Source of the DNA: Oikopleura dioica
Lineage: Eukaryota; Animalia; Chordata
DNA length: 64,000 nucleotides
Reading direction: 5' to 3'
Assembly: GCA_907165135.1 (NCBI GenBank)
Contig: OU015566.1
Location: forward strand, 1,488,001-1,552,000
Both the position numbers and the translations under genes were made by a program. Shown here one piece after another: positions 5,888 through 64,000 of the stretch (positions are counted from its first letter, which is position 1; every line of letters begins with the position of its first letter). The notes beneath the pieces are model-generated. The model saw nothing but the letters and a program-made list of their open reading frames with translations. It searched no databases and was not told where the DNA came from.

Positions 5888-6231
5888 TTAAGGACCACCC
5901 CGCCAACAATTTTCCTCAAAATATTGAAAATTTAAAAACAGCCATATTTTGGCTTCTGAGTGCGCCTGGAGGTTAAATTTATCATAAAAACTTGTTGGGA
6001 GCACTTTTTGTCCAATAAAAATCTAAAATTTAAGCAAAATTGCGACTTTTTCGTCATTTTTTGTCAAAAAATCTAATTTTCAAACTCGATTTTGAGGGTG
6101 TTAGAGTCGAGATAGACCCCCAAAAAATGGAGCCTCAAAATCGTTTTTGACCAAAAGAATCCATTTCCGGGGTCAAAATTTCGAAATTCCGAAAATAGAT
6201 TTTTTGAAAATTGTTGACGGGGGTTCCTTAA
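5888..6231. mobile_element. TTAA-flanked MITE, copy 1 of 3 (~340 bp family)
   Basis: ttaaggaccaccccgccaacaatttt ... aaaattgttgacgggggttccttaa; interior is the reverse complement of copies at 13495 and 29102. Confidence 0.85.
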
Positions 6232-6404
6232 CCAGAATCTTTTAATACCTGTAAAAAAGTCCACTTTTGGAAAAAGCACAAAACAAGAGCCGTGAAAAAG
6301 CTCTCTTGCTCCAAAATTGATATCAAGAAAAGGAGCTGGGCAAAAAGTCATATTTTCTCTCTTTATCTTAGGTCCATGGATTCAATATTCTTCGTATTTT
6401 ATAA

Positions 6405-8939
<2,535 letters not shown>

Positions 8940-55330: not shown

Positions 55331-57308
<1,978 letters not shown>

Positions 57309-58863: not shown

Positions 58864-61293
58864 CTAGAAATTTGTTTGATCTTCATCAAACGGATTTTCG
58901 GTTCGTGTTTTTTCTTCGTCGTCAAAAGCGACATTTCTGACGGAAAGTGGACTTTTGTCGACTTCTTCGCGGGAGAAAAGACGATCCAAGGCGGGAAAAA
59001 GGACGATTTTCGGCAGTTGATTCGGGCTGAAAAGACGAGTTATGAAGATGAAGAGGAGAGGAATTGATTGTACCTGATTTTCTTGACCCTGCAGATGATA
59101 AAAGACACTAAGCTTCCTACGACCAGATTGGTAACCAAGCCAAGTGTGCCAAGATAAAGATAGCTAATCGCATAAAGTTGAGCGACAGCTGGATAGTCTG
59201 AGTCATCAAAATCAGAGTCGCACCAAGGATCCGAGCTGTTCGAAGTGCAGGGGAAGTCAGAAGGGTAGCCTTCGCATTGAGATATTGTTTGAGGCGTTAT
59301 TCTTGCCCATTGCGGGTCTGAATGTTTTCTTCACGAAAATAAAAGGGGGTGAACCTGTTTTGTAAATGGTCGAGCCAATATAAGTCCAAACTGCGATTCC
59401 AAGACCACTGAGAAAGCCGACTATTGTGCCGATTTCCTCCGCCCAGGGGTTGAAAAATCCAAGAATAAAAACAGCAAAACTAGTACCACCTAAAAACACA
59501 TGTTTTTGATCAAAAATTAAGTCATTCCCCGTGGTCAAGCAAAGGGCTTGTTTCTTAGAAAATTAACTTACCCATCATTCCATTAACACTCAGCGCAGCT
59601 TGAAGAACGCCGCCAAGATTTGCCGCAATATAAGCAAATCCGATGCAAGCGATTCCAAACAGAACCGTTAAAAGTTTCGATAGGCGGGTGAAAAAGACGT
59701 CACTCTTGTGAGGCAAACGGGGCTGAATGAAATCGGTAATGGCGACTGTTGTCATTGAATTGATTCCGCTCGACACGGTCGAAAGTGTTCCTGAGAACGC
59801 ACCTTTAAAAACGCTTCAGGAGGACTTTATTAAATTAGGGTCACGGGGCTCGGGCAAAAATATGGAAAACCTGAGTCAGGAAAAAAAACAGATTGATTCA
59901 TGAAGCGATTCCTGAAACATAAAGCCCGGCAACTCCAGGAGTCGTCTTAAAAATCACAACTGATAAATATGGCACCAACTGATCTGTCGTATCAACCCAT
60001 CCGGCAGTATAAGGATCGCAGCAGGCATTATACCTAAACATAGAAATTCCAACCAACATTGCAGTAACGACAATCGACGAAATCAGCACCCAAGCGAGGT
60101 AAATCGAAATTCTGAGCTTAATATTTTTTGCGAATCAAGGAAGACTTTCTCTTTTCTTACATTTTTCTTATTCTTCACCGCCAAGGATCTCTGAACCATA
60201 CTTTGCGAGCAGCAGAAGCTATTTCCCCAAGTTCCAAATAAGCCGCCAATAATAATCGTCCAAAATGAATGGCGAATTCGCGGGTCCCAGTCGAACTCGT
60301 CAAATACCCAGTTTTCTGAAAGCTTGTACGGCTCGCTGATGTTTTTGAAGGAGCCAAAATCGACGGAAGCTTTTGAAATGATCGCGACGTAGCCGGAGAG
60401 CATAATGCAGATTTGAAAGGTGTCGGTCCAGACAACAGCTTTGAGGCCTCCAATGCTCGTATAAAAGATGCAAATTCCTCCAATCAGCCAAACGCAAAGC
60501 CACTTATCCAACCCAGTCACCACTTCCAGCGCCGTTGCTGGAGAATAAATCACGATTCCGACATAAAAAATATTCTGCGCAATGAACTCAATCGTCATTA
60601 GTCCTCGAATGACTTTTCCATTCATCTTCGAGGTTTTTCCAAAACGACGTTCGAGATATTCGTAGATGGATGTCAAGCCCATGTCTTTGAACATCGGCCC
60701 GAAAATCTCAGCGGCGAAGATGGAGCAGAAGAGGTAGGTGATGATGAAGTAGATGAACATCGCGTTGTATTTGTAGAACTCGACCGGTGTTGTCAGAATT
60801 GTGATGGCTTTATGAATGATTCAGTTTATTTCAATTCGAAAAAAATCGGAAGATTTGCTGAATCCAAAGCACCATAAATACTCTTTCAATATTGGAAAAC
60901 ACCCAATATTTTTTCCGAAAATAATTGAAAGCTAACTCACAGAAAAATGGAAAGCTGTATATGCCGAAAATTGTGGGCCTTTTTTGTAAATATTATCAGT
61001 CTCTATTGAAACCATAAATTACCTATCTTTTTTCTTTATTATAAAAAATCATTTCCTGAGAAAAACGTCGTCGCCAAACTCATCGCAATCGGATAGGGTG
61101 AAACATTGCCCCCACCCATCATGTACTCATCTGCATTTTTATTCCGATCCTTCCAGGCAAAATAAATCCCGATCACCGTTGAAACTCCAAGAGTGCAGCC
61201 GAGAATCAAATAATCCTGCCATTCGAATGTATCCGTCGATTTCGGTATCTCTTCCGTTTGCCAGCTACAGTACTGCTCTATACTCTCTGCCAT
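58864..61293 (-). CDS. SLC5 sodium:solute symporter (SLC5A6/8/12-like)
   Basis: DYLILG...IGIY, EYMMGG, SIYEYLERRF, GGLKAVVWTDTFQ, DPRIRHSFWT, QSMVQR, STVSSGINSMTTV, GGVLQAALS. Confidence 0.95.
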
Positions 61294-61607: not shown

Positions 61608-63346
61608 ATGAATTCGGAAGAAGCAGAATCTATCAAAGAGTTTTTCTCAAAGGATTTCTCCAATGTTGAAATAAAGGACATAATTTCGAGCTCTGATGAT
61701 GAAAGCTCTGATGAAACAAGCTCTCAACAATTATATAGCAATGCAGAAGAATGGTCATGCGAGGATAATCTTGATCCTGGATGGGAAAAACAGCAGCGAA
61801 GAGTAAAGTTTCAATAAATTAATTGAGAGAGTAAAACCGAGATTTACAGACTTTTGCAGCTTGGTGTAATTCTCATCTACGAAATGTCGGAACAAACATC
61901 GAAGCTGTCGATGTTGACTTCCGTGATGGCGTCAAGCTGATGCTTCTTCTCGAGGTAACATTTATTTAAATATGTTATAATCTTTTCACTTGTCAATCCC
62001 AGGTAATCTCTTGCGAGCGACTTGGTAAGCCGGACAGAGGAAATATGCGATTTCACAAAATCGCTAATGTGAACAAAGCTCTTGATTTCCTTAAAAGAAA
62101 AGGTATTCGATTGGCATCCATTGGTGCCGAGGAGATCGTCGACGGCAACGTCAAAATGACCCTTGGTATGATCTGGACAATCATTCTCAGATTTCACATC
62201 CAAGACATCTCTGTGGATGATTCTTCGGCCAAGGAGGGTCTCCTTCTTTGGTGTCAGCGAGAAACCTCGACGTATAGTAATGTTGACGTCAAAAACATCG
62301 ATAAAAGGTTTTCAGAATACAGTTAATATAAGATGAATAAATAATATTTCCGAGCAAAATGAGATGAAATAGAGGGACAGCTTGCATTTTATTTTCAGTA
62401 GAACAATCTAGATAAATTCGAAAATTTTGCTTTGATAAAAAATTTTCTAGCTGGAAAGATGGACTCGCTTTCTGTGCGTTGATTCACAAACATAGACCTG
62501 AGATTCTGCCACAGTTTTATGATCTTAAAAAGGTACTTTTAAAATCTGATGGCATCTTTATTCTCCTTCATAAAATACTTGCTCAGGAAGATCCGTTTAC
62601 AAATCTCAACTTGGCCTTCGATATTGCTGAAAAACACCTCGACATCCCAAAGATGCTCGATGCTGAATGTAAAAAACATATCTTATTGACTATTTGATTC
62701 AATGTTAAGATCTTGTCAACAATCCAAAACCTGATGAGCGTGCTGTCATGACATATCTTTCCAGCCTTTACCATTGTTTCAATGAGAGGCAATATCAATT
62801 ATTGAATTAAATTATCAACCTTATTTTAAGTAATCTCAATAATAATAATAGCGAAAATTTAACGAAGGTAAATGACAATGGTTCCAAGAAAAATGATACC
62901 GACGAAAATCTTATGAATGAGAATTCTGCAGCAAAAATCATCGATGATTTTAATGAACTAAATCTGAACCCGGATTCTTCGGTGCACCCGAAAACGATTC
63001 AAAAGGATTATTTAAAGTCGACAGGAGAAAGTTTTGACATTAATAAGAAAACAAATTCTGGAATGATAAATAAAAAGACGACGGCTCAAGAAGAATTCAA
63101 AAAGCAAGAAACCTTGGAAAAAAAGAATGGTTCTTTCTTGATATGTTTTAGTAATTATTTATTTTTCTAGCGTTAACTAGAGAATGCAAAATTTGCTGTG
63201 AAAATTTCGACGAAATCCGTTTTGAATGTGTTCTTCTTTGTGGACATCGATTTTGCAAAATTTGTATTCAAGAGATGCCCCAGAAGTTTTGCCCTGTCTG
63301 CAGAAAAGGTTACAGACCGGAACAAGCTATCAAGCTTTTTGACTAA
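61608..63346 (+). CDS. Alpha-actinin-type actin-binding domain (CH1-CH2) fused to a C3HC4 RING finger
   Basis: [21 protein letters not shown]...[25 protein letters not shown]...[11 protein letters not shown]...[13 protein letters not shown]...PKMLDAE...PDERAVMTY. In-phase GC-AG (62789-62830) and GT-AG (63130-63170) introns lead to CKIC...[10 protein letters not shown]...CPVC. Confidence 0.85.
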
Positions 63347-63451
63347 GCTGACTGTCTGATAATTAAAAAACGAATCGTGAAGTGAAAGTGTATTGAAAAG
63401 GGCAGTATGAAAAAAAGGAATATTTTCAAAGGCGAATAAACAGAGAAAAAA

Positions 63452-64000
63452 TCATACAACGAAGTCGAGATAGTAGACCATTTGGCGACGATTATTCCAG
63501 ACGAAGAGAGCTTTCTCGCGCATGTTGTATTGCATTTGCACGATATGACTAAAATAAAAAAAATTTCGAAATCGACGAAGAGAATTATTTACTGATAGCT
63601 GTCTGGGTACTCCACATGAATATCTCTTGTTCTTCCGCTGATTGTATCGATCGCGTATCTATAAAAAAGAAAGAAGAGCATTCTTTTGAAAGTTTACCGA
63701 ATAACACCATCTTTCTTCCCATCAGGCTCGGTCGCATAGAGGACACCACACATCATGAAGATATGCCCTATCTGCTTTGTCGTCGTAGAAGTTTCGATAA
63801 TTTGCTTGACGCTCAAATCCTTAGGGTCGAGGAGCTGAAGCTTCAACCGCTCTTCTTGGTGGTAGTCTTGTGGGCTTACTGACGGGTAGATCACCTTAAT
63901 TTTATTTTTTGAAAACCAGTAGGTAGATGAAAATCCTACCCAGAGACCCCGTTGATCAACCGAAAGCGTAATCCAACTATGCCCTTTCCACGTAAAAGGC
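63452..64000 (-). CDS. Olfactomedin-domain protein, 3' part (runs off the window)
   Basis: LSVDQRGLWVIY, LQLLDPKDLSV, FMMCGVLYAT, QMQYNMREKALFVWNN. Confidence 0.85.

Follow-up and report, generated by a model that had tools for sequence, protein, structure and literature searches.

Alpha-actinin consists of an N-terminal segment and a CH1-CH2 actin-binding domain (ABD), followed by a spectrin-repeat rod and an EF-hand domain, and it dimerises through the antiparallel rod. The coupling of a cytoskeleton- or membrane-skeleton-targeting module to a RING is known from MYLIP/IDOL (FERM-RING) and from the TRIM/MuRF proteins; their targeting domains are unrelated to the one described here and, to our knowledge, none of them has a tandem-CH actin-binding domain. 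RNF4 is an obligate dimer with SUMO-interaction motifs and a RING-HC at its extreme C-terminus, in which the last ligands lie in a CP-x-CRK sequence with a basic residue after the last Cys. RING domains generally contact the E2 through a hydrophobic residue in C-x-[IV]-C, the Pro of C-P-x-C and a basic "linchpin" after the last Cys.

Within the window, the whole 64,000-nucleotide stretch of Oikopleura dioica DNA analysed here, a gene at 61608-63346 (+) joins an actinin ABD to a RING in one continuous spliced frame. Three-frame reading and splice-site placement gave eight exons, all on the plus strand (61608-61802, 61850-61954, 62003-62307, 62451-62532, 62587-62668, 62710-62788, 62831-63129 and 63171-63346), whose uninterrupted frame encodes 440 amino acids. 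Intron lengths are, in order, 47, 48, 143, 54, 41, 42 and 41 nt. Intron 6 is of the GC-AG type and the other six are GT-AG; GC content is 0.19-0.32 in the introns versus 0.32-0.46 in the exons of this gene. The spliced translation is identical to the public prediction CAG5102525.1 (Oikopleura dioica OKI2018_I69 chr1.g341; Oidioi.mRNA.OKI2018_I69.chr1.g341.t1.cds), the genome assembly of the Okinawa lineage being that of Bliznina et al. 2021 (PMC8008620). The protein is already in the public annotation, where it is uncharacterised, and its architecture is new as far as our searches reach.

Four parts make up the protein: an acidic N-terminus, CH1-CH2, a stretch of ~70 residues predicted to be disordered, and a C-terminal C3HC4 RING. 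Exon 1 (61608-61802, +) opens with a start codon with A at -3 and encodes an acidic, Ser-rich N-terminus before an actinin-homologous end. Pfam scans returned two CH domains (E 9e-46) and, with the last exon alone as query, a RING above the cut-off; neither a spectrin repeat (PF00435) nor an EF hand was matched anywhere in the 440-aa protein. Likeness to alpha-actinin comprises the N-terminal segment followed by CH1-CH2, five shared introns and near-unchanged actin-binding helices, whereas CAG5102525.1 lacks both rod and EF hands, and since it has no spectrin-repeat rod it has no antiparallel rod dimer; where alpha-actinin continues from CH2 into the rod, it continues into a mostly disordered linker (predicted) and the RING. 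Candidate polyadenylation signals follow the stop codon, an ATTAAA at 63362 and an AATAAA at 63435 (region 63362-63440, +). An earlier sequence-only reading of the locus had reported an alpha-actinin-like CH1-CH2 with in-phase introns, the 42-nt GC-AG and 41-nt GT-AG introns, and a complete C3HC4 RING without frame disruption; all of these details were confirmed, with eight ligands present and a stop-free spliced translation equal to the public entry.

Exons 2-6 (61850-62788, +) encode the actinin-type ABD, residues 66-280, which aligns at 79% identity with the canonical actinin of O. dioica and at 72% with human ACTN2; its best solved match is the ABD of human ACTN2 (e.g. PDB 5a36, E 1e-115). 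An Oikopleura-specific one-residue insertion (DILPNY) is common to this copy and to O. dioica actinin, and a maximum-likelihood tree places the ABD inside the Oikopleura actinin clade as sister to O. dioica actinin (clade support 99/95), on a branch of length 0.41 versus ~0 for the parent. The parent is the canonical alpha-actinin gene at ~3.775 Mb of G000:C5 (L014, G000:C5:3770000-3779999), whose Bergen copy is P0136. Of the six intron positions that fall within the duplicated part, the two genes have five in common, namely those after QQR(K/R), after LLLE, before SWKDG, before (D/E)DP and after LDAE; the intron inside DFIESKG/VRL (DFLKRKG/IRL) has been lost from the copy. Because these positions are shared with the parent, the ABD is a partial actinin duplicate made at the DNA level, and a retrocopy origin is ruled out. 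The canonical gene (L014 ~6040-7270) contains two tandem, apparently mutually exclusive exon pairs inside CH2, beginning SWKDGLAFC(G/A)LIH... and LVEVAKPDER(A/S)(V/I)MTY...; the copy has a single version of each pair, and a marine transcript (P0137) contains the other exon of both canonical pairs.

Over 210 codons, the copy and its Okinawa parent differ by a dN of 0.115 and a dS of 0.85-0.98 (omega 0.12-0.14), and the Okinawa and Bergen parent actinins differ by a dN of 0.002 and a dS of 0.34-0.40. Since the two parents differ by a dN of 0.002 only, nearly all of the amino-acid change falls on the branch of the copy, and omega is still well below 1 when all of it is assigned to that branch. 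This comparison with the parental actinin, which the sequence-only reading had proposed, gives a value of ~0.13 over the ABD and indicates purifying selection, by which the domain has been maintained. Among the 119 positions invariant in 14 other aligned actinin ABDs, the copy keeps 103; the 16 changes are mostly conservative and cluster at the start of CH2, where the alpha-actinin segment KTAPYKNVNVQNFH is altered, and the actin-contacting helices are almost unchanged in the alignment. Where the actinins of Okinawa and Bergen have different states, the copy carries the Okinawa one at 24 sites and the Bergen one at 13. A copy-parent dS of ~0.9 is compatible with a duplication that may predate or postdate the Okinawa-lineage split, dated to ~25 Mya (PMC11067885).

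The RING, together with a 14-residue tail and the stop codon, is encoded by exon 8 (63171-63346, +). All eight ligands are present in C3HC4 order and spacing (C388, C391, C405, H407, C410, C413, C423 and C426), and the E2-contact positions are intact (CKIC, CPVC and CRK). Searched alone against Pfam, the RING exon scores 28.7 for zf-RING_5 (cut-off 27.9) and 23.2 for zf-C3HC4 (cut-off 21); with the whole 440-aa protein as query the same two families score 23.9 and 18.1, both under the cut-off. At least 119 places in the O. dioica genome match the last exon, the nearest RING paralogue being only 56-58% identical to it, and among 1.84 billion protein representatives the next best match reaches 55-57% identity. 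The closest solved RING by sequence is that of RNF4 (PDB 4ap4 and 2xeu), a weak match with a single-RING E of ~4e-4; the two proteins have in common the RING-HC at the extreme C-terminus, the CP-x-CRK sequence and the basic residue after the last Cys, and they differ in that the N-terminal two thirds of CAG5102525.1 are an actinin ABD where RNF4 has its SUMO-interaction motifs.

These matches define a family of O. dioica proteins with a C-terminal RING, the core EC-x-L-x-CGHR-x-C-x2-C...CP-x-CRK and a tail of 13-15 residues ending in (I/A)IKLF. Its RING lies on the last exon behind a phase-1 intron placed 5-7 residues before the first Cys. Examples are CAG5111119.1 (P0009), CAG5098476.1 (P0010) and CBY15173.1 (P0005), and, in the genome, L008 (C1:7746592), L010 (C5:5578667), L011 (C2:8227380) and L012 (C4:9916569). 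The RING of CAG5102525.1 has all of these traits, in core, intron and tail: intron 7 (63130-63170, +; 41 nt, GT-AG) is in phase 1 and lies five residues before the first RING Cys, the interrupted codon being G/CG, compared with G/AT in P0009 and G/AA in P0010. Family members are 75-250 aa long and have a Cys-rich N-terminal module and/or a coiled coil, whereas CAG5102525.1 has instead the actinin ABD and a unique low-complexity linker. In the larger members, the Cys-rich N-terminal module (VLSDAKLKCPA-KC...GKCC) is accompanied by a coiled coil. The public relatives of this RING are O. dioica proteins (Bergen and Okinawa) plus short environmental contigs, as given by the source records that were looked up, and a literature search for an expansion of RING genes in Oikopleura returned nothing relevant.

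The proposal that a partial actinin duplicate had recruited a RING exon stands in its first half, the duplicate origin being borne out by the tree and by the five of six shared introns, and the 3' end does derive from a RING gene. The recruitment of a lone exon does not stand: the donor is a RING-family gene that supplied the RING exon together with the phase-1 intron in front of it, and probably also the preceding helix-coding exon. We propose that a partial copy of the species' own alpha-actinin gene, from exon 1 to the end of CH2, was placed immediately ahead of the two final exons of a RING gene, the donor on that side being a member of a large RNF4-like family with a C-terminal RING, and that a new 42-nt GC-AG intron would join CH2 in frame to the penultimate exon of the RING gene. 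Work on nematodes leads to the expectation that a donor upstream of a leader acceptor converts trans-splicing into cis-splicing. In this locus, an upstream donor would turn the trans-splice leader acceptor of the downstream gene into a cis acceptor, which would offer a simple route to fusion.

In the resulting 440-aa product, the actinin ABD would place the protein on F-actin, the ABD would be linked to the RING through ~70 flexible residues and a short helix, and the RING would recruit E2~ubiquitin and modify actin-associated proteins or the product itself. A RING-mediated dimer may form, and it would also bundle filaments. We assign a probability of roughly 0.55 to the reading that the locus is a lineage-restricted chimeric gene of Okinawa-lineage O. 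dioica expressed as a fused mRNA. That its product would be a young, lineage-specific ubiquitin ligase with a complete actinin ABD as targeting module, and both an F-actin bundler and an E3 if the RING dimerises, is a more tentative suggestion whose odds we place a little under even.

The linker is encoded by exon 7 (62831-63129, +), which is rich in Asn, Lys and Asp, corresponds to residues 283-382 and ends in a helix that leads into the RING. Its only match in the genome is itself, and the exon alone returned no match from protein databases; its 99-codon frame is open, for which the chance probability is ~1e-4. In the AlphaFold model, the N-terminus forms a helix (residues 3-17) and then a disordered stretch, and block-mean pLDDT over the ABD is mostly ~75-97, falling below 50 at residues 163-173. 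Residues 295-365 are predicted to be disordered (pLDDT ~30, under 50), a helix spans residues 365-384, and the RING is modelled with a pLDDT of 92-96.

The product had been held to be probably monomeric, a view that the RING does not favour: it is closest to that of the obligate dimer RNF4 and has a C-terminal tail of the same length, exactly 10 residues lying beyond the end of the alignment in each protein. An aromatic residue stands at the penultimate position, as we take it to do in RNF4, where this residue acts across the RING dimer. By analogy with RNF4, a RING-mediated dimer seems at least as likely as a monomer, because the RING is RNF4-like, the tail length is equal and the penultimate residue is aromatic. 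A predicted complex of two copies of residues 372-440 scored 0.18 and 0.19, below the mark for any verdict.

The junction between CH2 and the linker is critical for this gene model. The putative intron 6 (62789-62830, +; 42 nt, GC 0.19) reads AG/GCAATA...TTTTAAG. Its length is a multiple of three, and the same reading frame runs through exon 6, intron 6 and exon 7, interrupted by a single in-frame stop (TAA 62808-62810) that is overlapped by ATTAAA at 62806-62811, ~20 nt ahead of a strong acceptor, so that stop, poly(A) signal and acceptor fall within 25 nt. Such a layout is that of an O. dioica operon junction, and operons are very common in this species: 1,765 have been predicted, their cistrons lying no more than 60 bp apart, and trans-splicing affects at least 39% of genes (PMC7986045), while the Okinawa-lineage assemblies contain thousands of operons (PMC11067885). 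Two cistrons may accordingly have been wrongly merged in the annotation, a possibility that we regard as unlikely but not negligible. The first would encode a protein of CH1-CH2 only, end at the TAA and be polyadenylated after the ATTAAA; the second would receive its leader by trans-splicing at the 62830 acceptor and start at the ATG at 62913-62915 (+), the first in the linker frame, to give a RING protein of ~130 aa. Both separate proteins may be functional, and the CH-RING protein would be absent or a minor by-product. A protein starting at this ATG would be complete and of family size, compared with 115-117 aa for P0003, P0005 and P0006, and no splice joints were seen in the RNA mapped, from runs of a divergent lineage at 90-95% identity.

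Several features of the junction weigh against two separate cistrons. An in-phase donor in good context lies exactly where it is needed: the 30 nt that follow CH2 contain no GT or GC other than that of AG/GCAA(TA), whose phase fits the acceptor. Between the acceptor and the first in-frame ATG, 28 codons are free of stops (chance P 0.08), and this ATG has a C at -3 and is preceded by out-of-frame ATGs at 62872, 62878 and 62893; whichever upstream AG serves as acceptor, at least one of them remains ahead of it. Intron 6 resembles its canonical 41-nt neighbours (introns 5 and 7) in length and GC content, and it has a T-rich run before the AG. Its donor lies 7 nt upstream of the ancestral actinin donor site, which is gone. 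Non-canonical introns make up 11% of the introns in the public O. dioica annotation, and that annotation joins both halves, its gene model coming from AUGUSTUS with RNA-seq hints; AUGUSTUS can predict a GC-AG intron without a hint. We hold it somewhat better than even that CH2 and the RING would be spliced into one fused mRNA, possibly alongside separately processed cistrons. Other placements of the donor fared poorly: a GT at 62773, taken as the donor, leads to a stop, and a 45-nt GA-AG intron from 62786 is in frame but has a poorer context. An apparent GC-AG intron occupies one and the same site in the paralogous RING genes P0009 and P0010 (AAAG/GCT...; L010:1157-1282 and L011:1139-1204), which provides a small internal check that GC donors work in the O. 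dioica genome.

Should the locus instead be a non-functional or decaying chimera left by genome scrambling, its frame would be open but it would be unexpressed or unused. The frame runs intact, free of stops and frameshifts, through 440 codons and eight exons despite a dS of ~0.9 from the parent, the ABD has an omega of 0.12-0.14, and all RING ligands and family-conserved residues persist although the nearest paralogue is only 56-58% identical; judged by these comparisons both halves bear marks of selection, and we consider a dead locus improbable. What speaks for it is the very long ABD branch (0.41 versus ~0 for the parent), the 16 otherwise invariant ABD positions that have changed, with their cluster at the start of CH2, a break in synteny 32 nt past the stop codon, the lack of an orthologue in the Bergen annotation, marine transcript catalogues and metagenomes, and the finding that none of the indexed RNA runs contains the stretch 61608-63346. 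Three bulk RNA runs of the same species label had no reads specific to the CH-RING gene and no joints, but their lineage is only 90-95% identical at the neighbouring gene, so this is not evidence of silence; a single-cell run under that label yielded no aligned reads. A few bulk RNA reads on 62110-62676 continue into canonical actinin sequence (LDAEDLIEVA). Judging by sequence identity, the same-label runs come from another cryptic lineage and are of little use for Okinawa-specific genes. Over 63406-63567 of the window, same-label RNA runs match at 90-95% with fixed differences.

The sequence-only reading knew of no animal protein with a CH+CH+RING architecture; the searches made since agree, with no orthologue and no other CH+RING protein found in any of them. 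A word search with the whole protein for an orthologue returned canonical actinins only, and a JGI metagenome scan with residues 285-440 returned one unrelated RING at 34% identity. No RING Pfam domain occurred among 120 listed CH homologues. An Atlas feature search produced no hit of use, the 99 structural models nearest to the protein in the Atlas had no RING in their listed family sets, and a literature search for CH + RING ligases found nothing relevant. A second CH-RING candidate at ~9.91 Mb of G000:C4, a CH cluster with a RING 3 kb away, proved to be a plastin gene and a separate RING gene. This region (L015, G000:C4:9908000-9917999) holds a plastin/fimbrin-type gene with four CH domains ~3 kb from a RING-family gene, with an unrelated ORF between them, a chance adjacency.

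If the fused mRNA exists, the gene is a natural experiment in E3 building, in which a high-affinity F-actin module has been joined to a catalytic RING, and its product would be a compact, tool-like protein for probing ubiquitination on actin filaments. It would also document a clear, datable gene birth by partial duplication and exon capture in a scrambled, operon-rich genome, and it suggests a mechanism open to testing, by which a donor arising upstream can, in an animal that trans-splices, make the leader acceptor of the next gene a cis acceptor and so fuse two genes. Were the locus an operon instead, it would represent a mis-merged gene model and a CH-only actinin fragment under selection, which would be of modest interest.

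Downstream, the convergent neighbour g342 (window 63378-64000, L016) encodes an olfactomedin-domain protein (P0257). Four ENA/Logan environmental contigs (L017-L020) carry this olfactomedin neighbour at ~75% nucleotide identity, with homology that starts at 63378, 32 nt past the stop of the CH-RING gene, and no CH, RING or SLC5 sequence was found in the 0.3-2.6 kb beyond 63378 on these four contigs. The end of homology at this point is as expected for a rearrangement breakpoint, and it is no sign that the gene is absent from those lineages because the species complex is extremely scrambled (PMC11067885). Upstream, two neighbours lie on the minus strand, a GAPDH-like gene (56002-57214, -) and a multi-exon membrane transporter (59043-61293, -) that by eye is sodium/solute symporter-like. 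The start codon of the transporter is 315 nt from the start of the CH-RING gene, and the two may share a divergent promoter.
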